From Macrostomum lignano (taxonomy: Eukaryota): a stretch of 64,000 nt of DNA. Under the pieces are notes generated by a model. It was not told the origin of the DNA, did no database searches, and was given only the letters and a program-made list of their open reading frames with translations. The translations under genes and the position numbers were made by a program. The stretch covers positions 148,535 through 212,534 of the forward strand of contig NIVC01001491.1 of assembly GCA_002269645.1 (NCBI GenBank), read 5' to 3'. Below, piece by piece: positions 6,727 to 64,000 of the stretch; the stretch's first letter is position 1, and each line of letters opens with the position of its first letter.

Positions 6727-7341
<615 letters not shown>

Positions 7342-12994: not shown

Positions 12995-14560
12995 ATGCCC
13001 CGGTATGACCACAGCAGCGCCCTCAACGCGTCCTTGAAGCCGTAGCCGTCCTGCAGGTGCGTCTACAGGCCGACGACTTTCAGTAATGGTTGAAGCGCTC
13101 GAATGCAGCGTTGCCTTGCGGGTGGTAGTGCCGCGACTGGCGGTGCTGGGTGCCGCAGCGCTGGAGGAAGTTTTTGAAATCATCGGGCATGAACTGCGAC
13201 CCGCCGTCCGTGCTGATGCTCTTTGGGAGTCCCCAGCGGCTGAACCACGTCGTTGGGGCGTTGATCACATCAGCTGTGGCCCTGGGGACATGCAGGCTGC
13301 TTCTGGCCACTTCGAATGCGGGTCGTACAGCACCAGAATGAAGCGACATGAGTTCGGCGCCGAATGCAGCTCCCCGAAGATGTCGAGCTGAAGCTCCTCC
13401 CAAGGTCGCGTCGGCCACTTCGTCGGAGTCATCAGCCAGCACCGTTTTGGATGTCTTGAAGTTTTTCTCGCTGAGCAGGCAGGCCTCGCAGTGCCGCACG
13501 AACTCCTCGATTTGGCTGTCGATCTGCAGCCACCAGACCGAGTCCCCGCAGTGCTGCTTCATTCTGCTCACTCCGAGGTGCTCAAAGTGGGCCAGCTGCA
13601 ACGTCGTCTTTCTCAACAACGCGGGGATCACCGCGCGCAACCCATTCGCCAGGCACTTGCCTTCGTTCCAGACTGTGAGCTGCTCCTTGATCCGCCAGAA
13701 CGGCTGCAGCTCCGGCCTAAAGCTGCTTGATGGAACTCGGCCAGCCCTCAAGCGTCATCTCGATCGCCTGGCTGATCACCGGGTCCTGTAGAGATGCCTC
13801 AGCCAGTTCGCTTGGGCTCACGATCTGCAGCGCGCCAGACCGCAGGACGGCGTTCACCTGGAGCTTCGCTGGGTCCTCCTCGCTGCTGTCGTTGCGCGCG
13901 CCGTGTTGCGACAAAAAGTCCGGAACGGTGTTCTTTTCCCCGGAACGTGGCAGACCTGGAAGTCGTACGCGTGCAGGCGGTCGGCCCACCGGTGCAGTCT
14001 TAATGGCAGGTGCCCGCTGCCCTGAGCCGTCAGCGACGTAGTCTGCGCTTGATGGTCCGTGTGCGACTCAAATCTCCGGCCGAACAGGAAATAGTGCCAC
14101 CTCTCATAACTCTCATGCCTCTCGCATGCCAATGCCTCTCTTTCAGACGCGGAGTCGCTGACAGGGTTCGGGATGCAAACGCAACTGGTCTCCGGACGCC
14201 GGCGCAGTCTTCTTGAAGCAAAACTGAGGTCATTGCAGATTCGGATCTTACCGTCAGGATTTGGGACGACCACCAGATTCGAGATCCACTCGGATGCCTG
14301 GATCTCCACGACGATCCTGTTGAGAGCCCCGTCCTCCAGAGCGACGCCTACAGCTGAACCCTGTTGGGAAGCTGCGACCCCCAGGTCCCCAGTAGAGCTC
14401 CCGTCCCGTGTCCCAGGGAGACGCAGGAAAATGACAGAGCAGAACTCACGAGCTTCCGTGAAAAAGCCGATGCAGTTCGCACTTTGCTATGGTAGACAAG
14501 TAAGTTTGTTTTGAAGTAGCCAACGATAGGACCAAGAAAACGCAAGGCCGCGGCTGCCCA
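12995..14560 (-). mobile_element. Ty3/Gypsy LTR retrotransposon internal relic (RT start, RNase H, integrase), frameshifted and internally deleted
   Basis: WISNLVVVPNPDGKIRICNDL (RT N-terminus), RPVAFASRTLS and FLFGRRFESHTDH (RNase H), HLGVSRMK..VWW..CEAC (integrase HHCC), GLPKSISTDGGSQF..HPQGNAAFERFN (integrase core). Confidence 0.92.
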
Positions 14561-16917: not shown

Positions 16918-17209
16918 CTAAAACTTTAGGGGTCAGGTATTGAATAGCGATTTTAAAATCCCAGTTAACGCTGTATTATATTCACATTCACCATAGTATT
17001 TAGAAACTAAAAAGGATAAAGATTAAGATTATTGTGCGGTCCGAAGGTGAGTCCAGTCACAAGAGAGGGACTAAACCAATTAATAAAATGCTGCATTCAC
17101 ATTTTATCTAAGCTTTGTGTCACAAATTGCGTGCGTGACACGTGATAGAAATCGTCTTGAGGTATCCTTGACCTCGTCGAAAAGCAACCAATTAGTGATG
17201 CCAACCGTA

Positions 17210-17577
17210 TTTATTTATTTTTTTATTAGAGGCAGGGGGTTGTGTGCACCCTGGCGCACTTTAAGCGACATAGGCACACAACCGGCGAGAGGCATTACTG
17301 CCCATTCCGCCGACTCCCCTGAGCAGGCATACAAGCGCGCGGATACGTACGCAGGCACACACTCACACAGGAGTGTACAGCGGCCCTAACTTTATATTAT
17401 CGTTAGGCATGTACACTTCACTGCGCCTTGGGGGGTTGGCCCTCAAGGCCGTTAATTGTACGAGCAGAGCCAAGCCGAGATTCCAATTCAGCCCCAAATT
17501 AATGTGACTGCACTTGGAATCGAGCCTGGGTCGCTGGCACACCAGAGCAGCTGCGCTACCGCTGGGCTACGGCCCCC
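17210..17577 (-). mobile_element. tRNA-derived SINE family 2, young copy with 14-bp TSD
   Basis: Head GGGGCCGTAGCCCAGCGG...GGCTCGATTCC, A-rich tail, TSD TGATGCCAACCGTA at 17196-17209 and 17578-17591. Confidence 0.92.
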
Positions 17578-18424: not shown

Positions 18425-20130
<1,706 letters not shown>

Positions 20131-21512: not shown

Positions 21513-21798
21513 GTGATCGAGCACAGCAATGCAGGTCCCAAAGCGATTCGGAGGCGCATTATTCGAGTATATTGATTCGAAAATTAAAAAGAAAAAAAAT
21601 TGAGCGGCAGCAGCGCCCTCTCGCGCTGAGCAGAGCAACATATAAATAAAGCACACGCACACCTGGGGTTAGAGGTGTTAGTCAGAGCACGTACAGGTAC
21701 CTACAGCGCCTAAAACAAGTACAACGCGATAAAAAGGGGAGCAGCGAGGCAGGTCGCTCCGCCATCAACAATGGGTAAAGCCCACTTGCTTCACCCGC

Positions 21799-22525
21799 CA
21801 TCAGATCATCTCAGGGTAAATATCTGTCGCACTCTATCAGATCATCTCAGGGTAATTATCTGTCGCACTTCATCAGATAATCTCAGGGTAATTATCTGTC
21901 GCACTTCATCAGATAATCTCAGGGTAATTATCTGTCGCACTCCATCAGATCATCTCAGGGTAAATATCTGTCGCACTCTATCAGATCATCTCAGGGTAAT
22001 TATCTGTCGCACTTCATCAGATAATCTCAGGGTAATTATCTGTCGCACTCCATCAGATCATCTCAGGGTAAATATCTGTCGCACTCTATCAGATCATCTC
22101 AGGGTAATTATCTGTCGCACTCTATCAGATCATCTCAGGGTAATTATCTGTCGCACTCTATCAGATCATCTCAGGGTAATTATCTGTCGCACTCTGTCAG
22201 ATCATCTCAGGGTAATTATCTGTCGCACTCTATCAATAATCTCAGGATAATTATCTGTCGCACTTCATCAGATCATCTCAGGGTAATTATCTGTCGCACT
22301 TCATCAGATAATCTCAGGGTAATTATCTGTCGTACTCCATCAGATCATCTCAGGGTAAATATCGGACGCACTTCATCAGATAATCTCAGGGTAATTATCT
22401 GTCGTACTCCATCAGATCATCTCAGGGTAAATATCGGACGCACTTCATCAGATAATCTCAGGGTAATTATCTGTCGTACTCCATCAGATCATCTCAGGGT
22501 AAATATCGGACGCACTTCATTAGAT
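21799..22525. repeat. 36-bp minisatellite, about 20 units
   Basis: Unit ATCAGAT(C/A)ATCTCAGGGTAA(T/A)TATCTGTCGCACT(CT/TC/CC); the plus-strand ORF shows the 12-aa periodicity. Confidence 0.95.
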
Positions 22526-22829
22526 CATCAGATCATCATCATCTTCGGCTGGTGCAGCATAAACGTCTATCCCTAGGCCCAAGCATCGCAACTACCATTC
22601 TTCGAAGTTATTTATTTTGGGATATTTGTCAGCTGAAATAGAGACCGCTTACTCAGCAAGTTAAGAGTTCGTGGACCGTTAACCCAATTAACCCGAGCCA
22701 GACGCTGAGTAATTACCGGTTTCTAATCAATTTTTCTAAGTTTTTGGGAGCCAAAATATGGCAAAAGTTTTCTAATGCGAGTTTGCTTTGGGGCGAATAA
22801 ACCCGCCCAAAAAACCGGTAAAAAAAATA

Positions 22830-33715: not shown

Positions 33716-36387
33716 TCAGGGTACAAAGCGACGCAGAATCTGCCTGAACGGCTCCTCAGGATGGCCTCTACCAGCGGCCGAGAACCTTCCAGTCGGTCGA
33801 AGGACGCCGCTAGGCGTGAGTATCGTCGAGTCGCCGTGCACCGCCTCTAGAAACGGTCGCTCCATCTCGTGTCCCAACTCTGTCGCTTTTAAATCGAATT
33901 CCTGACCAGATTTTACCGGCGGAGACACCTTCGGCGTCTTAGTCAACGAATTCAAGTTGTGAAGTCCTCGACGATTCAGTCTGTTGAAGGCGACACTGGC
34001 CACTTTTAAGTCGCCAGTGTCCAGAGCTTCGCGCAACTCGACAGCATCGGCAGCCGCGGAAGTTGACAGGGCAGCTCCGCGCGAGGAATCCGCCATCTCG
34101 GCGGCCATAGCGGAGAGCGCATCGAATCGCTGCCGCTGATGCTCCAGGGCATCGCGACAGTCGGCAAAGAGGCGACTCCACTGCTGTAGAGCCGACTGGC
34201 GCTGCTTGGCTGACTGGTTTGCCGACTCTGCCGCTCTAATTAAAGTGCTGGACTCCTCCTGAAAGAAAATTTGACAAGTTGACATGTAGAACATGAACAC
34301 TAATTGCAGCAATATCCGTTGTAAACCGTTGCTTTGTTAAAATTTGAGCGAAAAATGTTAGTTTTAGTTTTGGAACTTTAGTTTTATGTAATAATAATTA
34401 ATTACCTCGTGCACCTGCCCAAATAGGCAGATGTGCAACCGACAGCTCAGCCGCAGCTATTGCGCGGCGCATCTGAAGGCTGCGTACGGCTGTTCAGTCC
34501 AAGGACTGGGGGGGGGGGGGGGTCGCCACATGCACCCTCAATTACCCCAGCTAATGCTGGCACCCATTTTACAGCTGGGTGAACTGAAGCAATGCAGAGT
34601 TAAGTGCCTTGCTCAACGACACAAATTGTTCCGAGTGGGTTGAGAATCGAATCGAGGATCGACCTTTCAGTCGTGAGTTTCGACGCTGTAACCATTAGGC
34701 TACAACCCCTTTGTTGCAGTTTATTAATATTTGTTGTTACTTTGGTAAAACAATAGGAATCGGAAATCCTATTATAGTTTAGAATTTATAGCTTTGCATA
34801 CGAGTATAAGTAGCAAACTACGAGCATAAGGTATAAATACGGTATTCCACCCAAATAATTTTTATTGTCAAAGCTGTCAATCAGTTATAATTGTGTTCCC
34901 CGTGTAAAGTCAACAGATCATCAAGTACTCCTAAAAAGATATGTAAAGTCAGCTTAATGAAAGCCAATCTTAGATTCATGAAAGGTCTAGAAATGGAGGA
35001 TCAAGGCTGAAAGCATTGCAGCAAACCTGGGAGAAATCCGAATGACCATATTTTTTAAGGATTCAAAATGGTCTAGCGCTTATTAAGGTATTCAATCGCT
35101 GTTTATTAAAAAAGTGTTTGTTATGCTACTGATTGAGGGAAATACCAATGAAAGAAAACATACGGCTATTGATACGGATCGAACTGCTACAAACCGATGA
35201 CTACTTCTACCGATTGATCTGTTACAAACCAATGACTACTTCTACCGATTGATCTGCTACAAACCAATGACTACTTCTAGCGATTGATCTGCTACAAACC
35301 GATGACTAATTCTACCGATTGATCTGCTACAAACCAATGACTACTTCTAGCGATTGATCTGCTACAAACCGATGACTAATTCTACCGATTGATCTGCTAC
35401 AAACCGATGCCTACGTCTACCGATTGATCTGCTACAAACCAATGACTACTTCTAGCGATTGATCTGCTACAAACCGATGACTAATTCTACCGATTGATCT
35501 GCTACAAAACAATGACTACTTCTACCGATTGATCTGCTACAAACCGATGACTACTTCTACCGATTGATCTGCTACAAACCAATGACTACTTCTACCGATT
35601 GATCTGCTACAAATCAATGACTACTTTTATCGATTGATCTGCTACAAACCGATGCCTACATCTACCGATCGAGGACTACTAAATTTAAACAACTATAAAA
35701 GATTGAACGACCGTACAGCAATCATGCGCTTTCGTTAAACTAACTCTGAACGTTTTAACTTACGAAGTTACGATTATAACCCACCTTAAATCGCATCTGA
35801 TCGTTAGCGTAATGCATCTCGCACAGGTTCCGATCGCAGTGCTCGCACCTGGCAAATACCTGCTGCAGACAGGCACAGTTACCGGCACCCTCTCGAGCGT
35901 CGCATTTCGCGTGATGAAGCCACTGCTCCCGCCGACGCCAGCTGTCTACCACGCCGCGGACGTGAGGATTCTCCAGCGGACGATCGACCAGACGCTCGCG
36001 ACAAATCGGACAGCGGGCCACCTCGCCAGACGAGTGACATTTGGTTGCGATAGCCTGGTGACAGCCGCGGCACAGAGTGTGATGACGGCTGCACACGAAG
36101 CACGGATCAACGAAGGTGCTCAAGCACACTGGGCATTTCAGCTCCTCTTCGAGATCTTTGACTGCCGGAATCGAAACGTATTTTTGCATTTAAATAGACA
36201 GTTTCAAAACTTGAGCACTTTGCTCAGGTTTGTTGCGTTTTAAGATTGATTCAATTTGATCATAGTCTACCGTAATACCGAAAGACTTAATTGTTAAATG
36301 TCATGGGTTTGAATTTTTACAACAAAAAACTTTACAATGCAGAAACAACAACTTAGATAACTTACAGGTTCCACTTTCTGCAGACAT
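33716..36387 (-). CDS. TRIM-like gene 6
   Basis: Exons 36387-36366 (ATG...T|gtaagt), 36161-35785 (CPVC..DPCFVCSRHHTLCRGC..CPIC; CEHCDRNLCEMH) and 34258-33716; frames consistent. Confidence 0.85.
34388..34709 (-). mobile_element. SINE family 1 copy in intron 2 of gene 6
   Basis: Head GGGGTTGTAGCCTAATGGTTAC; body shared with the other copies. Confidence 0.85.
35178..35670. repeat. 35-bp minisatellite, about 14 units, in intron 2 of gene 6
   Basis: Unit CTGCTACAAACC(G/A)ATGACTA(C/A)TTCTA(C/G)CGATTGAT with alternating variants. Confidence 0.95.
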
Positions 36388-37161: not shown

Positions 37162-37539
37162 TTTTTTATTTTTTTTATTTTTTTTTTAGAGGCAGGGGGG
37201 TTGTGTGCACCCTGGCGCACTTTAAGCGACATAGGCACACAACCGGCGAGAGGCATTACTGCCCATTCCGCCGACTCCCCTGAGCAGGCACACAAGCGCG
37301 CGGATACGTACGCAGGCACACACTCACACAGGAGTGTACAGCGGCCCTAACTTTATATTATCGTTAGGCATGTACACTTCACTGCGCCTTGGGGGTTGGC
37401 TCTCAAGGCAGTTAATTGCACGAGCAGAGCCAAGCCGAGATTCCAATTCAGCCCCAAATTAATGTGACTGCACTTGGAATCGAGCCTGGGTCGCTGGCAC
37501 ACCAGAGCAGCTGCGCTACCGCTGGGCTACGGCCCCCTT
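37162..37539 (-). mobile_element. SINE family 2, young copy with 13-bp TSD
   Basis: TSD CATTATAGCGCAT at 37149-37161 and 37540-37552. Confidence 0.92.
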
Positions 37540-38085: not shown

Positions 38086-41230
<3,145 letters not shown>

Positions 41231-42104
41231 TTTTCAGTAAGAATTCTAATTGCAAAATTCATACAATGCGAAGAATCCGAGAAATAAAACTTAGAGGTAG
41301 AGCTTGCATGGTTCCTAGTTCTAAAGCGCGTTTAATGTAAAAAATCAGATTGTAAGTGCAATGTCTATTTATAGAGTAGCCAGTGCGTACGCTTCTAGTG
41401 TACAAAAGAACAGAATTCCAACGTACTTCTCGGCGTACAGTACGTACTCGTACAATGGGTATAGGTACAGCGTACGTTAGTCAGTGCATACTATTTCTCT
41501 TGCTCTTTCCCACGCAGCAATTTCAAATAAATATCCGTAAAACCAACTGCTGTCTTTCGCTTGGACACAACAACCTTTATAATTATAACCTACCATTCGA
41601 TCTACAAAATGAACGATTTTGGTTCAGGTAAGGTTGAAAGCAAGTTAATCCCCAAATTTAAGTAAAACAGGCCTGCTTTGAAGCTTTTTAAAATTTTTTA
41701 TGGAATTTCGATTCAAATTGAAACAATACGTGCGCCCGTTCTTGCATAGTTCTAATTAGGAGAGTAGCGGAGCTGGAATTAGTTTGAGGGTTCATCAACG
41801 CAAATTGGCCTGTCCAAAGCTGTCTTGCGATTCCCATGGCTTATGACGGCCAACCAAGTCTCAAGGGACAGGGTAAAGGTCGGGGATGCCCGACGATGGG
41901 AATAGCGGCGTTTTTGCGTCATTTATGTGTTTAGGGTTTTTTATTGAACCAAGCAAGATTAGCAGTTTAAATATTGAGGGTTTCATTGACACTATAGCAA
42001 AATGACAAAATAAAAAAGTGCATTTTGGTCATTTTTGTAGACTGTACTTGGTTTTGGTTGATTTTTTATACATGAGCCCAAAACCCAACGCCTGGCCCTC
42101 TGCA

Positions 42105-44151
42105 ATGAGCAAATCATCTCAAGGTTTCAATGTTGTTCCTATATTTTATACTTCTGATTTGCAGAGGTTGCTGAGGAGCTGCTATGCCCCGTGTGCTTGG
42201 ACCCCTACAACGACCCCGTATATGTGTGCATCCATCACCATAGCCTGTGCCGCGAATGCTACCAAATGATTGTTTCGACAGCTGGCAGTGACATCCCGCA
42301 GTGTCCGCAGTGCCGAGAGAAATTGACCAGACCCGTTGATAATACTCAACTGCGCCGTCTGGTGGAGGCTCACCAACAGCAATCTCAGCAGGCGGTCCAA
42401 TGCCAGGACTCTTCCTCTGGCGGCATCTGTGCTCGGCGTAGTGCTGAGCGATGCGGGCACTGCGAGCAGAGCTTCTGCGCGCAGCACTTCATCGCTCATA
42501 AAGAGCAGTTTCAAGTGCGTATGAAATTCACTGTTTCTTTATTGTTTTTTAAGGTTCTCGCTCTGAAGATTAATTTTTAGGTTCTTAAATGCGATCACTG
42601 ATTTCAGACCGATTGCGTTGAGCTTTTGTCGGCTGCAGATGAAGCAGCTCAGCAGTCAGAGAGTCGACAAAGAGTGCTAACCGAATGGGAAGTCTTTATT
42701 CAAAGCTGTGTAGCGCATCTGATTGAGAATTCGAGACTGCAGCGATTAATTCCCGAATCCTGGCTCGACGATGCATCCCGGAGGCACGCCGAAGATTTAC
42801 GAAGCACCCTCAACGCCGGTGACCTGCGGGCAGCCAGAGTTGCCTATGATGAACTCAGGATGGCCAAAGCGAGATTCGACCAGCAAGGACCGCCTCGCGA
42901 GATCGTTGGAGAGTTCAGCCGAGATGCGTTGTTCTCTCTGTTTCAAGAGAAGCTTTCAGCTCTGCTGACCGCAGCCGAACAGGTGTACCTTGACGGCATC
43001 TACGGCTTGGTCGAACGCGTTTGCCACATTGGAATTTCCACAGTCAAGCTGAAGATTGGGAAAGAGATTCAGAAAATTCCGGAGCTCAAATGCCGGCTTA
43101 GTTTCGTCCTGCCCGGTCGAGGCAGTCACTTCACTCCCTATGTTGACCTCAAAGCCATTCGTGCCGAGCAATTTGAAAGGGACATTCTGATTCGTTTCGA
43201 TTTCCAGCAGCAGTTCGACTACAGCACCATCAGTATGTCGAACGGTCCGGCCGTTTTAGCACAGTTTCTGCAGAGAGGACCGATTGAACTGCCGTTTTGT
43301 CTTCAGATGAAGTTTAAGGAGAGGCTGGCCTCCGGGGTGGCTGAAAATACCTACTGCAGCAGAATGTATCAACTCGCAGCTTTGCTGCCACTGGCGGAGG
43401 CGATCAGTCGTGGGGAGAGCATCGAAAACGTGGAGTGTCCTTGTGAGATTCTGAATAAGAAGTACACTTTAAATTACCTTTGTCTACTGAGTCATGACCC
43501 TGTTATTTAAACTACAAAAGCTTTTAGTGATAAAATGCACCAAAAACTCGCGAAACTAACTTTTCTGGTTTCTTAGAAAATATTTGGATTCTGGGCTTGC
43601 GCAAAAATGCAATGCTGTCAAGCTGAAATAGGAAATAGCTTCTCTTCAACACAAATGATAATAATATTCGTTTTTGTAGAAGCAGATTTATAGTAAACTT
43701 TTCTGCTGGTTAGATCAGAGGTATTTGGAAAGAGTACTTAATTGTTCAAAATCAATAGTTTTTTGCTTTATGAACTAATTAGATAGAAATTGACTTTTAC
43801 AACTGTAATGCGCATACAAAATCAAGGATTTACAGAAGTTGCCCTGTCTGTCTAATGAGTGTCTGACTGGTGGAACTTAACATTGAAAACGTGAGCTCCT
43901 AGCTCGACCGTAAAGACCAGCTGACGCAGTGCAATTAGCCAGTCGTTGGAAGCCGGTTCCGGCTTCTTCTGAGATTGAATCTCCAAGAATCAGCCTTAAT
44001 TGGTCTTCCCGCAGTGCTGGATGAAAATGAGGCACCTCGCGGATATGTCACGGTGTCCACCAACCTGCCGTGTCTGCTGAACCAAGTCTACCGGGAGCTG
44101 CCGGCTGAGGAGCAAAGCGAAGTTGAATTGAGGCTTCGAGGAGAAGAGTAA
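42105..44151 (+). CDS. TRIM-like gene 8: RING + B-box-like + coiled coil + RPGRIP1L-type RID (C2) domain, about 446 aa
   Basis: Exons 42105-42123 (alternative in-frame ATG 42072), 42165-42514, 42608-43442 and 44015-44151. C-terminal FDFQQQFDYS..LAQFLQRGPIELPF..LAEAISRGESIENVECP|LLDENEAPRGYVTVSTNLPCLLNQVYRELP aligns with the RID of RPGRIP1L in this window. Confidence 0.85.
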
Positions 44152-45480
44152 TTTCGTTCGTCCGAAGTCAAAATATGGTAAAATTGAAAGGTTAATTAGT
44201 TCGCTAACGATGAAAACTGGAAACTATGGCGTTGTCTGAACAGATTTTAAAAAACTTTTTTTGAACAGTAATTGTTTCTTCAAATATTACTCCAGTGGTT
44301 GTCTACATGTATATTTAAACAACTTCATACAATACTATCGCCGTAGTATTTCTGTTCTGACCTCAGTTGGTGCCTCAAAAGGCGTGACTACGCACTTCTT
44401 TCAAGCTCAGGAAGCAGGAAAATATTGGATTGCTATTAACTTTTCGCAAAAAATTTTTTGTTCAATTTTTATAGAAAATATTGGAAGAGATTATTTAGCT
44501 AGCCAGGAGTTTTACACATGATTCTTTTTGTCAAGAGTACGAGCGAATTATGCACTGTGCTCGTTTTGTGTTATAGATATTCTATTTACTCTAGAAAGTT
44601 TTTTAGGGTGGTTTGTAGCTCGTAGGTTTGGACGCACTCATCTTGACGTCGTCCGTTGTTAAATTTCAGCATCTTTCAGAGTCGTGTGGTGAGGAAAACA
44701 CACGCGTAGTGTCCTATTTAAGGCTTTAAATGATTTCTTTTCGAGTCATTGTATAATTATAACTTTAAACCAACTGGTTAATTAAGCGTCTTTTTCAATT
44801 GTTTGTCTCCAATTTTCGCAGTATTCACGCTCGTATTTAACTAAATGGAACGTATTACGAGCTAAAAAGCATATATATTTTGAATTATCGAAGTGCGTAT
44901 TTTTTTAACCTCAAAACTTATTAATCATGTGAAGAACAGTTTAGTTTCATAAAACGCTTTTTGGGGTATATACACGCTCAAAAAATCGCTTATTTTTAAG
45001 CAAAACAAAGAGTTCTTAAACAATTAATTACCCATAAAACTTTGTTTAAGTTACTTACGGGGATAAGGCATTTATTAAGGCACTTTATCAGATACCTCGT
45101 GCAGAATCAAACAGCTCAAAAGTTAAAGGCTGCATTATTCGACTCGAACTCACATGCAAACTAATCACAGACAAATATAACAAGAGTTATAAAGTGAAAA
45201 TCGATATGAATCCAGTATAATATGGAATTAAAAGTCAGGTGGTGAGTCACCTTTTGAGAGATGAAAGCATAAAATTAAGTCTTTCAGACTCAAAAAATAT
45301 CACTGCATTCCATACTCACTTTTAACGTGATGAAGCAGCCGTGGCAGGCTGGTTTCAATCGCGATGCTGCCAATCTTCTTCTCGTTTTGAATGACTGAAA
45401 TGAAAACGTTGATTGAATCTGGGGTGATTAACAGTAAAATACATTTTTTCTTTGTTGGATTGTGTTTTAAATGGTGTTTT

Positions 45481-45845
45481 TTTTATTAGATTAGAGGCAG
45501 GGGGGTTGTGTGCACCCTGGCGCACTTTAAGCGACATAGGCACACAACCGGCGAGAGGCATTACTGCCCATTCCGCCGACTCCCCTGAGCAGGCATACAA
45601 GCACGCGGATACGTACGCAGGCACACACTCACACAGGAGTGTACAGCGGCCCTAACTTTATATTAATCGTTAGGCATGTACACTTCACGGCGCCTTGGGG
45701 GGTTGGCTCTCAAGGCCGTTAATTGCACGAGCAGAGCCAAGCCGAGATTCCAATTCAGCCCCAAATTAATGTGACTGCACTTGGAATCGAGCCTGGGTCG
45801 CTGGCACACCAGAGCAGCTGCGCTACCGCTGGGCTACGGCCCCCG
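45481..45845 (-). mobile_element. SINE family 2, young copy with 14-bp TSD
   Basis: TSD TTAAATGGTGTTTT at 45467-45480 and 45846-45859. Confidence 0.92.
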
Positions 45846-46188: not shown

Positions 46189-49100
46189 TCATGCGTAGGT
46201 CAGAATTCGATGTAATGTATTAAATGTACAAATCTGCCCCGCAACATAGATGGACGTCGAAAACGTCTGCTGACCTAAATGACTTCAAATTGCAGACGGG
46301 AGAGAGAAATCTCTAAATCTCACGTGGAAACTCGTTCCAGATGCAGCGGTCCTGTTCGATACTGGGTTGCAGGCCGACTCTAGCCTCGCACAAGTCGCCG
46401 GCTGCCTTACAAGCCAGCGTGAATCGAAGCTCGACTGGATCAGCCAGTAGCAAGCTGGTTAGCTGCTTCCTCATTCCTTCTTCTGAGTAATCGAAGCGCC
46501 ATATATAGTCGAAGTTTAGGCGATAATCTCCAGGCTGAGACCACCCGGGTCTGGGGATGAGCACGCTGGGCGTGTGCGTATCCTCAGAGTCGTAATAGCC
46601 AGGTAGATTGAAGTAAACATAGCAGAATTGGTTGTTAAGTTTGGGATTTTCTAAGACCTCACTGTTCTCCATTAGATGCACAGTTGATATGGCGATGTCG
46701 CAGTGCCTCGAAACACTTTTCACTGTGAATGGTTTTTGTGTTTATGCTTTTTCTAGAATTTGAAGCGTTTACAAGGGTTAAAAGTCGAAAATACTTACTC
46801 CTATAATTCAGATGACTTCTGATGCTGATAGGTACAAATCTAAGTAGAGATTTTGGTAGCTCACGGCCGATCTCCAGTAGCAAGCTGGGCAAATCCGTGC
46901 TGATTTTGATGCTGCCCACCTGCTCGGTCCTCGCCATTACTAAAAGTTTTTGATAAAATTCATTACAAAATCCGAAATTCATATTTAGCGTTTTATGCAA
47001 AATCCAGAAAAAAGTAAGTTTACACGTACCAGGAAATCTCTTGTCTCTAACATTTTCGCCACGTCTTAAGTACTCATCGAGTTTTATAACAGACCTACCC
47101 AATTCAGTCTTAACGAAAGAGCTTGCCAAGTTTGGTGATTTGCAAAATACTTTGAACGCGATCTGCAGGTTTCCCTCGAGAATCGACTTGGCCAGCATCA
47201 GGCGGTTTTGGTAGTTGCCTGTCATGCTGTAGTCGTAAGTCTTTTCAAAATTGAAAGCAAGAAGGAACCCGTTTTTCGGAGATTGCACCGAATTCAGGAC
47301 TGGTCTCAAAAGAGACGTCATTGTTTCTTGAAGCTTGAAGCCGACTAGGTCAAATGCTACGTAGCACTTTCCCTTGCCAAGCTGTGAATTTGTCAAGACT
47401 TCAGATGAGCCGTTCAGTTGCACGTCAGCTATTCGCACAGTGCAGTTCTCAACGAAGGCTTCATCGAATTTGCGAATAGGCTGATTATTACCTGTAATCG
47501 AAAGGTACATGTCTGTCGTATCTATGGGAATGCATAGTTGTAAATATGAAGCCTCATTTATTTAATAGTTAAAATACAAGGATAGTTCGACATTGTCTCA
47601 CCCTCGGCTTCATTTTCCTCAGCAGTAGGTTTTTGGACGTCCTCAAACGAGTCTAACCGTTTCCTGATCGAAATTAGCAGACTCGGCAGGCTCATGCTGA
47701 TTTTGATGCTGCCAACTTTATTACCGTTTGACAGTACTAAAGATACAAGGGATACGTTTGTTGCGACAGCAATTCGGACACTATCAGCATGTGATGGTAA
47801 AAGCCACCTAGCTTTTTAACAGACAGTAGACAGTTTTTTAAACTCGTGAAACTTGACTGAAACCTGCATTGCTTGCATACTAGGAACTCAGATTAATGCC
47901 ATATGATTATCAATGCTATCATATAACACTGGGACTACTGAAACAAAGGGAAAACCACCGTTGGACTAGTTCCTGTTAATAATAGCTAAGAATTATATCA
48001 TTAAAAGTTATTCCTGTCTTTATTGTGCTACTCGGGTAAACGGATGACACATTTTGAGTCTCCCTAAGCCACCCACTGTCTATCTACCGATCGAAAAAAA
48101 CTCACGTGGAAAGCTTTGTTTTCGAATATCCTCGCCTCGAGCAACAAACTCGTCCATTTTGACAGTCGCCTTGCCAAGATCCATGTAGAATTCACTCTCT
48201 GAGTCGGACGGCTCGCAAGCTACCACGAACGGAATCTCGATGCACTTTCGTCTTAAAAGCAGCATAGTTAATATTTTGCTCTTGCTTGCGCTGCTGTAGT
48301 CGTAGACTCCTTGGAAATTGTAGCTGAGGCAGAACTCCTCAGGTCGCGACCTGCCCGGCCTGGGCGTCGGCACAGATCCAGGCGTTTCCGTCTCCTCGCT
48401 TCGGAAACCGGGTAGCGAGAAGAGCACGGAGCACTTGGTGTTGTCGAGTTCTGGCTTCCTCAAAACATCGCTTGTTTCACTGAGCTCCACATTGAATATC
48501 TGGACTTTACAGCTTTCCATAGTGAATGAAACTAAACCTAGTAGCTTTTTTAAGTCGTTCTAATTCTGTCTGGCATCGTTTAAATAGCAAGTTCGCAAAC
48601 TGCAACTTCAGCTGAACTTTGGAATCTAAGAGGGAAGGTGAAGTTCTTAGGTAAAAATTGTCCACCTTAATGAACTCCCACTTTCTCTGAGTAATTTGGG
48701 CTCTGGAATAATATTAGCAAAAAATGAAGTCAGAGATCTTCTACGTGCTGCAAAAGCCAATCTTCCTTTGTGCGAAAGAGAGTTAGAAATTGTCAGAAAA
48801 GTGGATGCGCTGCACACATCTTTGAGTACGTCATTGTGCATAATAAAATGGCAGCACTAAAATTAGCAGCTTACCCAAATGAAGTTCGCTTGATATTTTC
48901 TATTTATCTACCAAAATATAAAAATAAAAACGCTGAAACAATATCTAATTCATAATATAATCAGAATATAATTCTGAATTAGAAATAAAAACAAAAATTG
49001 CAAACTTATTCACTAAGAATCTACGATACACACACCGTAAAACATAACAAACGAGATTCTCTATAGATGTACATGTTAGTACAGGAAATTTAATTTAGAA

Positions 49101-51221
49101 ATAACCTGATGCATCAGTTACACAACCAATGAGCATATGCTTACATGTAAAGTTGAGCAAAATATTAGTAGCATGTACAGCTGATTCTAACGAGCGCACT
49201 GTTTTGATTTTAGCTCTCATAACTTTTTTAGCAGAATTTCAAACCACTTGGGCACTTTGAAATTGATAAGCTTTCTAGCTCTTTAAAAAAGTTATTGACT
49301 TTTTTTTACCCTCTGGTATTTCATCGCAGATTTCCCGCAGCAGACTGGGCAAGTTGGTGCTAATCGTGATGCTGCCAACAACTTCATCTCCGTTCAGTAC
49401 TGAAATAATAAAAAACGGCGTGTCTGGTGAACGACGCGTCTACTCGACATGTCCACTCAAAGCCCATTCTAATGACTTTTAAGCACGCACAAACATGAAA
49501 ACAATCATGAACTCATCAACTCAATCATGAAATTATCAACGCAATCATGAATCATCAACTCAATCATGATATCATCAACTCAATTATGAATCATCAATGT
49601 AATCATGAGATCATCAACTCAATCATGAATCATCAGCTCAATCAGGAAATAATCAACTCAATAACGAAATCATCAACTCAATTATGAATCATCAATGTAA
49701 TCATTAAATCATCAACTCAATCCATGAAATCATCAAGTCGATCATGAAATAATCAACTCAATCATGAAATTATCAACCAAAATCTTTAAATCATCATCTC
49801 ATTCATGAAATCATCAACTCGGTCATTAAACCATCAACTCAATCGTGAAATCATCAAATCAATCAATGAATCATCGACTCGATCATGAACTCCTGAACTC
49901 ATGAGTTTGATTATCATCAAAAGCGTGGATCATTCAAAATTAAGACCACAAAAGAACATCAAAAGTTAGTTAGGATAAAAAATTAAAGCGAATAAACTAC
50001 TCGTAATTAATTAACATGTCTTGAAAAAAACCTACACGGAAAGCTCTCGTCTTGAATGTCCTTGCCATCAGACACACGATCTTCGAGCTTGACGACCGCA
50101 GTGCCAAAATCCAAGAAGAACTCGCTGTCCTGATCCTCCGCCTCGCACACCAAGGTGAACGGAAGCTTAACTGGACTCGCCATTAACAGAGTGGCAAGCT
50201 GGATCCGCTTATTGTAATTTGTATCGTAGCTGTAGTCAAACCTCTTCTGGAAGTTAAACCGAAGATGGAAATCTTTTGCCTTGGTCCGGCCTGGTCTTGG
50301 CGTTGGTAGCGAGAGAGAAGTCTCCGTTTCATCCATATCAAAACCAGGTAGATCGAAGGACACAAAGCTGTTGGTGTTGTCGAGCTCGGGATTCTGTAGA
50401 GCTCGGGAAGATTGCTCTAGCTGGACACTCGATATACAAACTGTACACATCTCGCGCGAGTCTGCTTTAGAAGTCGACTGAGTCCTCCGACTGAGTGCTG
50501 AAGTTTGTTTCAGGTTTCAAACTCTTATTGAGAGTGTCTTTATGAGAAAATGACGAATAAATACAGAGTAAAATGGCAACAATAAAGCTTAAATTCTCAC
50601 AGTCTTTAATATGATCATCGGCAGCTGGATTCGTTTCTATGCAAACGGCGAGCAGTAAGCTGGGAATACTTGTGCTCAGTTTTATCGTGCCAACTTGCTC
50701 TTTGTAGTAGGAAAGCACTAAAATATAAAACATCCGATTGATAGTAGTTAAGGAATTGATTTCAATTTATTACCTACCGGTATTTTGTAAATATAACATT
50801 CTCAACCCGCACCAGGAAAGCTTTCCTTTTGGACGTCCTCCTTTCGAGCAATTCTATTATCGAGTCTGACAACGGCTCGGCCCAGATTAACTTCACTTTG
50901 CGATTCGTCCGGCAGGCACATCAAGGTAAAATTGACATCAGCATGATACCGGCTGAGCATATCATCCAGAGCCTGCCGCTTGCCCCTGCTCGAATAGTCG
51001 TATGAACTTTCGTAATCGAATTTCAAGACCAGATCCTGGCGTGTGGACGCTCCTGGTTTTCGGGTCGGCAGGATGGCGGGGGTCCTGGTGGCCTCCAGCT
51101 TATAGCCTGGCAGATCGAAAAGCACATAGAACTTTGAACTTCTCAGATTCAATCCTGCCAAATCAGGGCAAGTCTGGTCGAGCCGGACGCTGAATATTTT
51201 CACCACACAGCTTGATTCCAT
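46189..51221 (-). CDS. Poly-RID unit: five tandem RPGRIP1L-like RID domains, about 908 aa if spliced as one gene
   Basis: Exons 51221(ATG)-50813, 50717-50601, 50497-50036, 49399-49310, 48531-48106, 47736-47602, 47491-47030, 46939-46799, 46722-46324 and a tentative last exon 46274-46189. All introns are GT-AG phase 1 and I found no in-frame stop. Confidence 0.75.
49498..49920. repeat. Degenerate 19-20-bp tandem repeat (AATCATGAAATCATCAACTC)n in a poly-RID intron
   Basis: Direct reading. Confidence 0.85.
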
Positions 51222-52067: not shown

Positions 52068-52415
52068 AGCCTAGTGGGTTGTAGCCTAGTGGGTTGTAGC
52101 CTAGTGGGTTGTAGCCTAGTGGGTTGTAGCCTAGTGGGTTGTAGCCTAGTGGGTTGTAGCCTAGTGGGTTGTAGCCTAGTGGGTTGTAGCCTAGTGGGTT
52201 GTAGCCTAGTGGGTTGTAGCCTAGTGGGTTGTAGCCTAGTGGGTTGTAGCCTAGTGGGTTGTAGCCTAGTGGGTTGTAGCCTAGTGGGTTGTAGCCTAGT
52301 GGGTTGTAGCCTAGTGGGTTGTAGCCTAGTGGGTTGTAGCCTAGTGGGTTGTAGCTTAGTGGGTTGTAGCCTAGTGGGTTGTAGCCTAGTGGGTTGTAGC
52401 CTAGTGGGTTGTAGC
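52068..52415. repeat. 15-bp minisatellite (GGGTTGTAGCCTAGT)n, about 23 units
   Basis: Direct reading; nearly perfect, one unit has CTT for CCT. Confidence 0.97.
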
Positions 52416-53606: not shown

Positions 53607-56600
53607 TTAGTTAACGAATCTGACGGCAGACTTTTTCGCGTCCGGGAGTTCGTTGTAGACCTCCAGTAGCAGGCTCGGCAGGTTCATGCTGATTTTGATG
53701 CTGCCCACTTGTTCATCGTTCAGCATTACTAAAATTGTTAGAAGACACATGGCATGATTAATGTGAGGTTTGGATTAGTCAAACTTATTTATTATTTACC
53801 AAATATTGAAAAAAATCTAAAATTACATATTACTACTAATGATAATAATTGATTACACCTGCCCAAAGGGTATTGCGTGGCGCATCTGAAGGCTGCGTAC
53901 GGCTGTTCAGTCCAAGGACTGGGGGGTCGCCAGACACCCTCAATTACCCCAGCTAACGCTGGCACCCTATTTACAGCTGGGTGAACTGAAGCAATGCAGA
54001 GTTGAGTGTCTTGCTCAAGGACACAAATTGTTCTGAGAGGGTCCAAAATCAAACAACCGACCTTTCAGTCGTTTGTCCAACGCTCTGTAACCACTAAGGC
54101 TACAACAAGTATTTGTGAAAATTTATTTCAAATAATCCTACTCGAGTTTTCACCCGAGTCAACTGGAACTCACGAGGAAAGATCTCTTCTCGAATGTCCT
54201 CGCCTTGAGCGATTCGATCGTCCAAATTGACCATCGTTTTGCCCAGATCCACGAAAAATTCGCTCTCTGGATCAGACGGCTCGCACACCACAGTAAACGG
54301 GATCTCAATACTCTTCTGTCCCAATAGCAGCATCGCCAGTACTTTGCGCTTCTCGTAGCTGCCGGCGAAACTGTAGTCGTAGACTCTCTGAAAGTTGTAA
54401 CTGAGGCAGAACTCATTGGGTCGGGACTGGCCGGGCCTGGGCGTCCAGAGAGACACTGGCGTCTCCGTCTCCTCCTGCGAGAAGCCAGGCAAGAGGAAGA
54501 ACACGTAGCACTTGGTGTCATCGAGGTCGGGATTTCTTAAAGCCTGGCAGGTCTCGCTAAATTGCACGTTGAATATCTGGACTGTGCAGGCTTCCATTGA
54601 AGCACGACCAGTAGCTGTCAGCATCAGCTGCTGGCGGAGCTCGTCCCCGTGGCTGCTCTCCGTCACCACGCCATCGGATTCCTCCGCCTCCGGTGCCGGA
54701 CGCTCTGTGTCCTCGTAGTCGTCCTCATACTCAACCTCCTCCACTTCGTCTTTCGGTTCCGCCTCGGCAACGTCGTAATTGTCGTCTCGCAGACTGACGG
54801 ATTGCTGATGCGAAGCGACGCCGCTTCTACCAACGCTTGGACCTGAAGAATTCGTGGAGTGTAGAATTCGCTTGGAGCTTGGAACTCTTGGTTTAGTCTT
54901 TATCTTCTGCAACCTGCTTATTCGTTTTTTAGACAAGCCCTGGGTCAGGGTCATTGACAATGCCGAACTCACCTAACGATGTATTTCTCACGTCCTGCGT
55001 ATCCGTGATGCTAGTTACGCTGTCGGTGACGGATGCTAAAGTGATGAAACCAGTTAGGAAAATTTTAGCAGCCTTGCTTTAGCCAGAAATAGTACTAACA
55101 GTAGGTTGATTAAACATGCATAGGCCTACCGTCCATGAGGGTGCTGACCCGAGTCTGGCTCGCCTGCGTATCGCCAGCGCCACCGCTGCCGCCGATGCCA
55201 AGCCGACGCTCTGCCGCGGCAGCGGCTAAAGCGGCGGCCGACGGCGCGTGCCGTTTCGGCGGTTGCGGCGTCTGAGACACCTGCGGCTGAATTTGGAGTT
55301 GGGATTCAAAAATACAGCTAGCTAAAAAATAAACTTCAGTAATTTTTTTATTATCTTGTCAACACTACCAACCTGATTGTCCCCAGTCAGAGATCCCGAC
55401 CGACTGCCAGTTCGTGCACTCGGTCGTGGCGACGACGATCCCGACGCTGAATTCGGTGCTACAGCCGACGCTGTTGGCGATGGACCATGGCTGCTTCCGC
55501 TGGCACTTCCTGTGCCTCGGCGCGGGGTTCTCGGCTGCTGAACTGGCTGTGGCTGCGGCTGCTGGGGCTGAGGTCGCTGCTGCGTGCTTCTCGCTGATCC
55601 GGTGTCGGATCCCAAGGCCACCGCCGCGCTGCGATCAAGAGTAGAGTCATACCCAGGTTCCCGACGGTGCTTCAACTGCGGCTTGTCTCTCAGCAGTTCA
55701 GCTTCGCCAGTCATCAGTGGCAGAGGCTCGGCAGGTCCGTCCCAATGACCAGCTGGATTGTACGCAAACTGCCAGCTGAGCTCAAGCTCCAGAGTGCCGT
55801 TCGGCTGCTGATCAGCTCCAAGTAGTTGGTAGATGCCCTGCACAGCCCGGTTCTGGCTTAAGGACACTAGATCGATCTACATGGGGATAGATAGGGGATT
55901 AGTAATGGGGTTAAATCGGTAAGAATAAGAATTTTTTGAGCCTTGAATATGCGAGAAATATGAAAAGTTTAATCATGGCTGTTAAAACGTGTCTAAATCC
56001 TTATTGAAAACAATGAATGACATCAAAGTCACCTTAGCAACGCCTAAGTAGGCGCTTTCAAGAGGATCGTCTTCGTCCAGCACCCAGACGACGAGCTTCT
56101 GCGTCTTCAAATAGCGATCCAACTCTGGGGTCGGCGTCAGAGTCAGCTGCTGGTAGAATTGGAACTCTGGATCGCTCGAGTTTGGGATGGCTGGTGAAAC
56201 AGTGTCCTCACAATCGAAGAACTTGTAGGAGCAGTACGGCGTCGGCTGGAAGTCCGGTCGGCGAGCTTTCAAGCCTCGACAGCGGACGATCTTCACGCCC
56301 AGAGTGTTGGCACCGCCGGCTGCGCGACGATTCTGCGCCAGGTCGTCGAGCGCTTTAAGGCCCTCCGCGGCCGCTTGGTGATTGGCCGACATGTAGCCAA
56401 GAGCCTTGGCGCGCTCCCGGTAGAGCCGCATCGCCTGCTCCATGGGCACCCGCATCCGCATCCAGTAGTCCAGGCAGCCCACCACCGTGCCTCCGTCCAC
56501 CGACACCAGCTGAGCTCGGCCGGACACCGGGGCGGTCGGTTTCGAGTCGAGCAGCTCGCGGAAGTAAAGTCGACAAGCGGCCACTTGGTGATAAGTGACG

Positions 56601-61540: not shown

Positions 61541-64000
61541 CTACTCCCAGTTTATTCGTTCGATTGCGCTGTTCACCGCTTGCAGCACCAGCTGCATCTG
61601 CTGAGGCGCCACGTCGGAGTTGGTTCGGTCAGGTGTGCTGGAGCCGATCCTCAGAGGTGCAACTGGCTGGGACGTCTCCTCCGAATCAGAGGAGCAACCG
61701 GTGTCAGTGCATGTGCAGGTGCTGCAGATGTCCTCGCTGCCTTCATCGCGCTGATGCTGATGGGCCAGGGTCGATTCGACCACTTCAACAACCGCGGTAG
61801 ATGCTGTGGCGAACTGCATGCTACCGCCGAAGCCTCGCGTGGCGGCGCTACCGGTCAGCAGTGCTGGCAGCGGTTCGCTCGAAGGTAAATCGACTTCCTC
61901 GCCGGAGCTCACTGGCTCCGTGTTGTTCTTGTTTGCAAGAGTGTCAGGTGAGCTATGAGCGCTACAGCTGCACGAACTGACACTGCTGCTACCGTTGTTG
62001 TCATTGCTAGTGCTGTTAGTGCCAGTGGTTGTGGTGCTACCAATCAAAGAAATCTCCACGCCGATTATTGACGACGGCACAGGTCGCACGCGCGGCGGTT
62101 GGCAAATCAAACAGCGAGAGAGCCTTGCCAGATCTGCTGCGTGTGTGGCAGCGTTGCTTCCTGACGGCTCAAGTTTCTCAGCCTCTGGTGGAGTCGGGAA
62201 GAAACTTAACAAGTGCTCGTATTTATCTTCATCGTCTGAATTGGCGTCGTCGTCTAAAACAGCATCAACAGTTCCAGTGTTGGCGTGAAACTCCGGACGG
62301 TCTTGCAGTTGGATGCGCAGCGCCGGTCGACGCCGATCCGCTTGGCTTGCCGGACCCGCGGAAGTCACCGCCACGCTCGGCGTTTCAGCGGCCACGCCAA
62401 CTCCGAATACAATGTCTGTTACGGCATCGTTAGATGAAACATACTGGTCGCAGATGCGGGTGGACGCTGCCATTGCGTTAGTTGGTTCGCAAAGCCGGTA
62501 CCGAGACGGGGGGTTATCTTCAGCTTGCTTCAGTGAGCACTCACTTGTCGATAGAATCACTGCATCAACGCGACAGACTTTGGACTCCTCGGACAGAGGC
62601 CAAGACATCATGGCTGGAGAGCCCCCGGCGCCAAGGGAAACGAAGCTGCCATTTAGATCAGCGTAGCTGCTGTCGCTATTCCAGATTTCCACCGACTGTC
62701 TGATGGTTTGCGTCAAAGTGGCAGTTGACGACGTTGGCGTGGCCCTGGTGCTTGAACTAGAGATAATTCCCATCATTTGTTGGCGCGGATTCGGCGACAG
62801 GTTTGGTTGTTGGAGTGTCTCTAACCGATGCAGTTTCGGCATCGGATAAAGCTTGGCTTGGTGCAGTTCGGGGCGATATTGTGCGACGTTGTCAATTGCT
62901 TTGGTTGCTCAGGCTCCTCTTCATCGCTTATTTTGTCTTCGTCAGTTGATTTTTGTTCATTGACATGCTCGACTTGAATGTTTTTAATCGATTGCCGCTC
63001 CATTGACTTGGGTATCGTGGGCGATGTATTTTGCTGTTTCTTGGACTTTTCAGCGTTGGGTTGTTTGTCTGGCATTGTTTTCTGATCGTCGTCACCATTT
63101 GGCGCGTGTTTGTTCTTCCTTTGCATCCATTTCTGCGCGCGGTGGAAGAGCTTGTAGCGGTAGAAGTGCGCCGCTACAAAAACACAGCAGCTAGAAAGCA
63201 TAGTACAATTGCAACTATAAGAAGAATGGTCGTCACGTTCGACAATGCGCCAGAGTTCGAATCAGACGAATTAACTGAGCTCGACTTCGTCTGTCTTGAA
63301 CTTTTAGGATCGTCGCTTTGCAATCGATTCCAGCCTCTAGATGGAAGCTCGAGCCATGCAGATTCCACAGCTAGCAGGAGCCGGGAGAAGCGATTCTCGC
63401 CCAATGCTGCCCGATAAACTGCAGCCGAGGCTGCACTTTCAGCGACTAATCGTTGTCGACGACCGCTACTGGCATCCTTGTCAAATCTGTTCTCTGAATA
63501 GTAGAACAGCTGAGTGCAACGCAATCGCGCAATTGGTTCTGACGTCACGAGCTGACTGACGCTGCTTAACGTTTGCTGGGGCGGCTCGCCTCCTCTGGGC
63601 TGCAGTGTGAACAGAAAAGCGACGGAAGACGCCCATGCTTGGCAGTCTAGCGGCTAGATTGGTCTCTAACGGGCATCGGAACTGATGGCACTGCACAGTA
63701 TTCAGACAGTCGGCCAGGCAGAACGCGTTGGCTGGTGCTGGTAAAACTTCTACCACTGAGAAAGCCACTAGACCGCGACCGCGAGCGTCCATTGAGTGGC
63801 AGCGTATAAGTATAGAGCCACCGGAAGTGCTGTCATTGTCTAGACGAATCTGAGTAAAACGCAGGCTAAGCTCGATACCCCCGCCAGGAATAGACAAAGA
63901 ATGAGTCTCTGTGGACGTTTCCACTCCACCAGGGAGCCGTGCAGTCTTTAGCTGAGTGACTGTTGAAGCAGCTGACGATTCTGACAACAAATCAAGGCCA
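61541..64000 (-). pseudogene. 3' part of a probable single-pass membrane protein gene with a long Ser/Thr/acidic tail, broken by two frameshifts; runs off the window
   Basis: ORFs 63990-63481, 63548-63174, 63201-62821 and 62842-61541 are collinear. Adding one T to a T5 run near 63177 restores TILLIVAIVLCFLAAVFFVAAHFYRYK. A second shift lies near 62900. A short intron is possible at about 63571-63511. Confidence 0.5.

Follow-up and report, generated by a model that had tools for sequence, protein, structure and literature searches.

A TRIM-like RING gene of the flatworm Macrostomum lignano with a predicted C2 domain derived from RPGRIP1L

The DNA analysed here, called the window throughout, is a 64-kb stretch (64,000 nt; contig NIVC01001491.1 of assembly GCA_002269645.1, Mlig_3_7) from the flatworm Macrostomum lignano, and all coordinates refer to it. 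Compared with the contig over 31609-54151, it agrees at every base. It contains two gene clusters, both on the minus strand: a RING cluster at 9-39 kb and, at 46-61 kb, a cluster of RID copies together with RPGRIP1L. Between them lies gene 8, the GenBank gene BOX15_Mlig013276 (41609-44151, plus strand; called span 2543 nt), whose 446-aa product PAA67346.1/PAA87951.1 carries the label 'hypothetical protein BOX15_Mlig013276g2/g1'. Gene 8 is the only member on the plus strand, and the original prediction, made from the letters alone, was right to place it at the boundary of the two clusters and inverted relative to both. We describe here the make-up of its protein, which pairs an N-terminal half from the RING family with a C-terminal half that we assign to a diverged RID. 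According to Remans et al. (PMC4519163), the RID of RPGRIP1 and RPGRIP1L is a C2 protein-protein module that binds RPGR. As a hypothetical protein, gene 8 is already in the databases; its RID is not annotated there. The parts of the gene are as follows.

41609-41627, plus strand: first coding exon as annotated; MNDFGS plus 1 nt, donor GTAAGG; used by the GenBank and UniProt models
42105-42123, plus strand: alternative first exon of the original prediction; MSKSSQ plus 1 nt, weak donor GTTTCA; inside intron 1 of the annotated model
42165-42514, plus strand: exon 2, RING and B-box-like zinc finger; ends FQ/GTGCGT, with FQ/GT common to all RING family members
42185-42310, plus strand: C3HC4 RING finger, residues C14-C55; C-x2-C-x10-C-x3-H-x2-C-x2-C-x13-C-x2-C
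42401-42499, plus strand: B-box-like zinc finger, residues C86-H118; C-x8-C-x7-C-x2-C-x4-C-x2-H-x3-H
42608-43442, plus strand: exon 3; ends CCT T/GTGAGA, a phase-1 donor
42608-42868, plus strand: helical/coiled-coil region, residues 124-210; homologous to the second exon of the RING family
42869-43012, plus strand: junction zone, residues 211-258; helical, with homology to neither parent family detectable
43013-43442, plus strand: main part of the predicted RID (C2-type), residues 259-401; ends at the conserved phase-1 donor CCT T/GTGAGA
43443-44014, plus strand: phase-1 intron; position kept in all local RIDs and in a Mytilus B-box and RID gene
44015-44151, plus strand: exon 4, terminal; encodes ...VSTNLPCLLNQVYRELP..., comprising the last strand and helix of the RID (GYVTVSTNLPCLLNQVYRELP) and an acidic tail, then the stop codon

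The spliced open reading frame (ORF) of gene 8 has 446 codons and GT/AG at all junctions, as seen by three-frame translation and splice-site inspection, and the model that includes exon 41609-41627 is identical to PAA67346.1/PAA87951.1. By the same inspection, exons 2-4 and the splice sites of the original prediction proved exact, and the peptides it quoted from gene 8 and its neighbours were found in their places. Only its start differs from the databases: the ORF from the first exon 42105-42123 is in frame, yet no database model uses it, the annotated models having 41609-41627 instead. In a search with the spliced protein, the sole match was UniProt A0A1I8GNY8 (446 aa, 97% identical), which stems from an older, separate annotation outside the NIVC GenBank record and represents the gene 8 protein with 7 substitutions; its 90% cluster also contains PAA67346.1/PAA87951.1, and the UniProt name of the protein is merely 'RING-type domain-containing protein'. 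The GenBank annotation of the Mlig_3_7 assembly was built only from RNA-seq, using StringTie, TACO and de novo transcriptome assemblies with TransDecoder (PMC5730564), so the annotated 446-aa model implies a transcript across all exons. Gene 8 is a real gene, transcribed according to this transcriptome-built annotation, and the transcript so implied would run through the RID segment, as the original prediction supposed. A second copy, on contig NIVC01000210.1, is 100% identical over the 2543 nt, introns included, while the flanks of the two copies show 110 differences in 3 kb (NIVC01000210.1 against window positions 40109-45651). The identity of the copies could be due to recent gene conversion or be an effect of assembly redundancy.

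The assignment of the C-terminal half starts from the window itself. With the gene 8 protein as query, tblastn picks up all five RID copies that lie at 46-51 kb, with E values from 4e-8 to 2e-2, and also matches the parental RPGRIP1L RID exons at 53.6-54.6 kb. In a leave-one-out test with a hidden Markov model (HMM) built from the six local RIDs other than gene 8, the gene scores 70.5 bits, the best of 5000 shuffles reaching 7.2, which bears out the RID homology claimed for the last ~190 residues. A phase-1 intron directly after a Pro codon (FP/CP) is found in 7/7 local RIDs, so that gene 8 has indeed kept it, and the terminal-exon motif G.I.(I/V)S.(N/D)LP.LL is common to the local RID family including gene 8. 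Searched against the PDB, the RID family profile matches 4qam_B, the RPGRIP1 RID, over the whole domain (E 1.3e-10). The AlphaFold2 model of A0A1I8GNY8, for which the local RIDs served as alignment input, has a beta-sandwich at residues ~260-430 (pLDDT about 60-88), and the top PDB match of this RID model in Foldseek is again 4qam_B (E 7.6e-8, 181 columns, TMt 0.59), followed by generic C2 domains; superposition on the RPGRIP1 RID had been named in the original prediction as a structural check, and it came out in favour. From these profiles and the predicted structure we conclude that the last ~190 residues of gene 8 are a diverged RID with the type II C2 fold seen in 4QAM chain B. It is because of this divergence that public annotation shows only a RING domain.

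The local TRIM-like family is the source of the N-terminal ~210 residues, given the family homology of exon 2 and of the helical exon. The exon 2 family has six further members in the window, each of them encoded by the minus strand. None of the RING ligands (C14,C17 / C28,H32 / C35,C38 / C52,C55; 8/8) is missing or varies within the family alignment, and the last Cys is directly followed by Arg56 (CPQCR), which we take to be the 'linchpin' position of active RING E3s. When the RING family profile is compared with solved structures, the TRIM21 RING is best (E 2.4e-9), ahead of other TRIM RINGs; the best relatives of the gene 8 RING in sequence and structure are those of TRIM21, TRIM25, TRIM69 and TRIM72. 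The AlphaFold2 model of exon 2 (pLDDT 84) has the TRIM21 RING 6fga as its best PDB match (TMt 0.77) and superposes on this E2-bound RING with a root-mean-square deviation of 1.8 Å. Within the second finger, seven Cys/His columns are invariant across the RING family, and the profile and structure alignments to the TRIM21 RING-B-box 5olm_A and to TRIM72 constructs extend through it; a match to ANCHR-like_BBOX is weak (E 0.04-0.4). From sequence databases, the family profile retrieves proteins with Pfam RING and zf-B_box domains. Over residues 124-210 the coiled-coil family HMM gives 40.9 bits, and BLASTP aligns gene 8 with gene 6 (P0016) over residues 7-206 (E 2e-33). Elsewhere in the RING family, P0013-P0016 measure 295-321 aa and carry no additional domain. 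Profiles and models justify describing the N-terminal half as a TRIM-like RING followed by a B-box-like finger and a helical region, the B-box and the coiled coil being not strictly proven. Of the RING and B-box claimed earlier, the RING thus stands, by its 8/8 ligands and the TRIM21 profile match; the B-box is carried by its Cys/His pattern and the TRIM21 and TRIM72 alignments and is missed by Pfam. A match between the end of the coiled coil, AAEQVYLDGIYG, and EMERPFLEAVHG in genes 6 and 7 did not hold up: it is not significant alone, and family homology cannot be followed beyond residue ~210.

But how did the two halves come together? The neighbours of gene 8 that bear on this question are listed here.

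38086-39345, minus strand: gene 7, RING/B-box-like/coiled-coil member adjoining gene 8, head-to-head, without a C-terminal domain
46313-51221, minus strand: array of five RID-only duplicates between RPGRIP1L and gene 8
46324-46720, minus strand: RID copy c46, RID-only duplicate
47030-47456 and 46659-46939, minus strand: RID copy c47, RID-only duplicate
48106-48520 and 47558-47736, minus strand: RID copy c48, RID-only duplicate
50036-50450 and 49275-49399, minus strand: RID copy c50, RID-only duplicate
50813-51221, minus strand: RID copy c51, RID-only duplicate
53607-54597, minus strand: RPGRIP1L RID, with main exon part 54174-54597 and terminal exon 53607-53728; Pfam RPGR1_C E 2e-13
53.6-61 kb, minus strand: RPGRIP1L gene; Pfam C2-C2_1, C2 and RPGR1_C; 1290-aa product P0008

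Homology to the RING family can be traced no further than residue ~210, and that to the RIDs sets in at residue 259; the fusion point therefore lies within 42869-43012, inside the continuous exon 42608-43442. The RID homology of gene 8 begins at RID HMM position 2, which is the start of the RID-only genes (ME.C...), and this suggests, as far as sequence can tell, that a RING gene without its former stop codon was joined to a complete RID-only gene. Since the homology begins exactly where the short RID genes start, the donor was probably a neighbouring RID-only duplicate. Sequence comparison traces the domain ultimately to the RPGRIP1L RID, with the RID-only duplicates as its likely immediate donors. 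Gene 8 is plainly a product of domain shuffling, its parts coming from two tandem arrays that lie side by side. As both arrays are read from the minus strand and the RID array is the upstream one, neither one inversion nor one deletion can have put the RING ahead of the RID. No fewer than two rearrangements must have taken place, such as an inversion combined with either a junction-forming duplication or a read-through fusion. No inverted repeats flanking gene 8 were found, only a dispersed direct repeat.

The fusion does not stand alone. A HMMER scan of the gene-8 profile against 1.84 billion representative proteins returned two clusters with both halves, gene 8 and the M. lignano protein A0A1I8GQ13, the profile being so divergent that other RID chimeras may be missed. 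A0A1I8GQ13 (P0011, 420 aa, 'RING-type domain-containing protein') is not encoded in the 64-kb window. It has the family RING and a RID HMM match of 41.6 bits, aligns end to end with gene 8 at 26% identity, and shares the order of RING, B-box-like finger, helical region and RID; it keeps the RING ligands, has Lys after the last RING Cys, and differs from gene 8 in a shortened mid-RID. In neighbour-joining trees of the RID and of the RING halves it is sister to gene 8, a placement drawn from short, very divergent alignments in which long-branch attraction is possible. The same architecture, the 26% identity and the sister position in both trees point to one old fusion and a later duplication, with both ORFs and the zinc ligands retained. 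That the architecture is not known from elsewhere, as the original prediction had it, is consequently only partly true: it recurs in this second M. lignano protein and, in part, in Mytilus (below).

What separates the chimeric RIDs from the rest of the family was examined in an alignment of 15 canonical RIDs (human RPGRIP1, mollusc-type RIDs, M. lignano RPGRIP1L, its second homologue and RID-only copies). At least 80% conserved in these are 22 columns, of which gene 8 keeps 12/22 and A0A1I8GQ13 6/22, and the columns kept in the chimeras are mostly core hydrophobics. With the other M. lignano RIDs the chimeric ones share 20-34% identity, compared with 26-61% of those among themselves.

Several results weigh against reading gene 8 as a TRIM-like protein with a RID. 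Among them are the Pfam models, which the original prediction had offered as a check and which went the other way: RPGR1_C (PF18111) gave no match to gene 8 at E<=1, zf-B_box gave none either, and the RING models stay below their cut-offs, with E values between 1e-4 and 7e-3. With the C-terminal part alone as query against the PDB, phmmer did not find 4qam and returned only a chance match to a PDZ protein. Because these direct Pfam and phmmer tests miss, the RID link is transitive, running through the local paralogues and a model built with them. The AlphaFold2 helices over residues 112-256 are of low confidence (pLDDT below 55), and in the full-length model the RING, zinc-finger and coiled-coil part has a pLDDT below 50. 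Neither gene 8 nor A0A1I8GQ13 still has ETETP..P[RK], the motif that canonical RIDs conserve most strongly, whether human, mollusc or flatworm; the conserved Arg and D.G have gone from both as well, and this loss could reflect relaxed constraint, not new function. Literature full texts and two supplement sets yielded no expression data for Mlig013276, and the caution on the neighbour-joining trees belongs on the same side.

Among known systems, the TRIM/RBCC ligases (TRIM21, TRIM25, TRIM72) come closest in plan: like gene 8, they run from a RING through a second zinc finger and a long helical region to a C-terminal domain, which in TRIMs binds the target, and the RINGs of TRIM21, TRIM25 and TRIM69 are the nearest to that of gene 8 in sequence and modelled structure. 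Unlike in these ligases, the second finger of gene 8 is missed by Pfam zf-B_box and the C-terminal domain is a RID-type C2 sandwich; the local family to which its N-terminal half belongs is otherwise without a C-terminal domain. TRIM subfamilies are defined by variation in the C-terminal domain. To our knowledge, C2/RID is not among the described classes of this domain (SPRY, COS-FN3, NHL, filamin, PHD-bromo, MATH, ARF, transmembrane). The RID of RPGRIP1 and RPGRIP1L (PF18111, 4QAM chain B) has the same fold, phase-1 intron and terminal-exon motif as that of gene 8, but it belongs to a coiled-coil/C2-C2 body in RPGRIP1L and to a RING protein in gene 8, and canonical RIDs keep the ETETP..P[RK] motif whereas the gene 8 RID, undetected by Pfam, has lost it. 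A more distant analogy, and only that, is offered by the NEDD4-family HECT ligases ITCH and SMURF1, E3s that use a C2 domain for localisation or partner binding and whose C2 is among the Foldseek matches; their catalytic domain is HECT, not RING, their C2 is N-terminal and of the lipid/Ca type, and the whole proteins are not homologous to gene 8.

A partial counterpart exists in Mytilus edulis, where five proteins annotated as 'RPGRIP1L' (CAG2186541.1 and four relatives; P0039, P0088-P0091; 241-255 aa) consist of a B-box fused to a RID (Pfam zf-B_box E 4e-8, RPGR1_C E 4e-49). The B-box has an upstream exon to itself, and the position of the final RID intron is as in gene 8. In contrast to gene 8, these proteins, all of them predicted models, have no RING and no coiled coil, and their RID is canonical. 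Since the Mytilus RID groups with mollusc-type RIDs, the fusion in the mussel is independent. One such gene, on CAJPWZ010000139.1 (10001-21323), comprises the B-box exon and a four-exon canonical RID and encodes 248 aa; its four close relatives lie on the same and two further contigs.

Our preferred reading, which we hold to be probable, is that gene 8 encodes a TRIM-like chimera in which the RID-derived C2 domain serves as target-binding or localisation module and has probably changed its partner. By analogy with TRIM ligases, the helical region would dimerise the protein, the RING would recruit a ubiquitin-charged E2, and the C2 domain would bind the target or localise the protein; E3 activity, dimerisation and the role and partner of the RID are inferred, as is any ciliary targeting. 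As the chimeric RIDs keep the core of the domain and have lost the canonical surface motif, the partner is probably no longer, or not only, RPGR, and binding of RPGR by the gene 8 RID appears doubtful. An E3 with a transition-zone domain, as originally proposed, is plausible, and weakened in the part that concerns RPGR and the transition zone.

The alternatives differ in what they make of the RID and of the RING. If the old partner had been retained, the chimera would act in the ciliary transition zone, its RID binding the RCC1-like propeller of the flatworm RPGR or another RPGRIP1L partner, and it would ubiquitinate components there or be tethered. Descent of the domain from the RPGRIP1L RID, the RPGR binding reported for the RPGRIP1/RPGRIP1L RID in PMC4519163, and the position of gene 8 next to RPGRIP1L and the RID array all speak for this, but the E-T-E-T-P..P-[RK] motif, the conserved Arg and the D.G are gone from both chimeras and their RIDs have diverged further from the other M. 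lignano RIDs than those have from one another, so that we consider it unlikely. Less probable still is a non-catalytic regulator or decoy, in which a helical oligomer would sequester RID partners or compete with RPGRIP1L and the RID-only proteins while the RING has no ligase role. The expansion of RID-only and tandem-RID genes in M. lignano suggests selection for free RID modules, and the RING matches do fall under the Pfam thresholds; yet gene 8 keeps 8/8 ligands and the Arg, A0A1I8GQ13 keeps the ligands and has Lys, and the RING model fits the E2-bound TRIM21 RING at 1.8 Å.

That gene 8 might be an evolutionary by-product, a transcribed but functionless fusion that arose from array rearrangement and is drifting, we regard as very improbable. 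The intact 446-codon ORF with its correct splice sites, the preserved hydrophobic core of the C2 domain and the full set of zinc ligands are at odds with drift, and a paralogue of 26% identity that shares the architecture and has an unbroken ORF implies that the fusion, once made, was maintained for a long time; retention of both chimeras therefore counts against a functionless product. In favour of drift are the location where two unstable tandem arrays meet, amid microsatellites and remnants of transposons, the fast divergence of the RID with loss of conserved motifs, and the lack of functional or expression data in the literature. An assembly misjoin near 43.0 kb or an annotation artefact joining a RING gene to a RID fragment, for which one could cite only that Mlig_3_7 is repeat-rich and highly redundant (PMC5730564), is the least likely reading of all, because the junction lies inside an uninterrupted exon, the identical gene occurs on two contigs with differing flanks, an independent UniProt entry has the same protein with 7 substitutions, and the gene model is transcript-derived.

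Returning to the preferred reading of a TRIM-like chimera with a C2 module, gene 8 adds C2/RID to the C-terminal domains of TRIM-type proteins and does so unseen by standard domain annotation. One could go further and see in the independent flatworm and mussel fusions an unrecognised TRIM-like class, in which a ciliary C2 domain would recognise RCC1-type propellers or transition-zone partners and bring ciliary gating under ubiquitin-dependent control in heavily ciliated animals; we offer this as speculation and think the chances of it slim. If it is true that the protein targets RPGR-like or transition-zone proteins, ubiquitination would be linked to ciliary gating. Without such a link, gene 8 would be a lineage-specific curiosity and still an example of well-preserved domain shuffling in a tractable animal: a single 64-kb window shows the steps, from the parental RPGRIP1L through RID-only and tandem-RID duplicates and a tandem RING family to the chimera at the boundary. 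RNA interference and transgenesis are available in M. lignano, making the function of gene 8 directly testable.

The RID array has features of its own. Pfam RPGR1_C is passed by the RPGRIP1L RID and by 3/5 local RID copies. Copies c51 and c50 (49275-51221, minus strand) are annotated as one tandem-RID protein of 331 aa (A0A1I8J8Y7 and relatives) and, in GenBank, as a gene of 370 aa. The phase-1 donor that follows the c51 RID, the first of the two, splices to an acceptor just upstream of the Met of c50, and c46 has a similar phase-1 acceptor (cacag/TG), so that phase-1 sites enclose the RID main exon in at least some copies. Copies c48, c47 and c46 (46313-48520, minus strand) are without a called gene in the GenBank record and may be pseudogenes or unannotated genes: c46 is without a recognisable terminal exon, and the intron of c47 is open in frame, ORF 46659-47510 continuing across it. 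Another RPGRIP1L-like gene with a RID (Mlig022890/Mlig033584, about 1016 aa; P0012/P0093/P0094) occurs in M. lignano outside the window, as do the further RID-only proteins A0A1I8H3X0 and A0A1I8FUE8, from which we conclude that the RID family has expanded genome-wide. On M. lignano together with RPGRIP1L, nothing was found in the literature full texts and two supplement sets. Upstream of the RPGRIP1L coding exons, ORF 61541-62842 (minus strand; 433 aa, Ser/Thr-rich, no Pfam match) may be a gene in its own right or belong to the 5' region of RPGRIP1L.

Repeats and mobile-element remains are spread over the window. Most of the spacer between genes 7 and 8 is occupied by a perfect (ACTA)n microsatellite of 1.7 kb (39401-41111), and other long tetranucleotide arrays are (CTGT)n at 6727-7341 and (CTAT)n at 18425-20130. 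A dispersed element of ~370 nt is present in direct copies at 37172-37537 and 45477-45844, 96-99% identical, which bracket genes 7 and 8; a near-identical peptide encoded by ORF 17117-17389 suggests a third copy. Within the RING cluster lies a retrotransposon fragment (12830-14309, minus strand) with integrase zinc-binding and core domains and RNase H, and in the UniProt-type model P0010 (806 aa) two RING genes have apparently been joined to this fragment in error. The ORFs 232-921 and 4761-5696 (plus strand), the latter with no Pfam match, are paralogous, with hydrophobic N-termini and long identical stretches in common. Minisatellites are located at 21798-22529, 35173-35669, 49502-49901 and 52068-52415.

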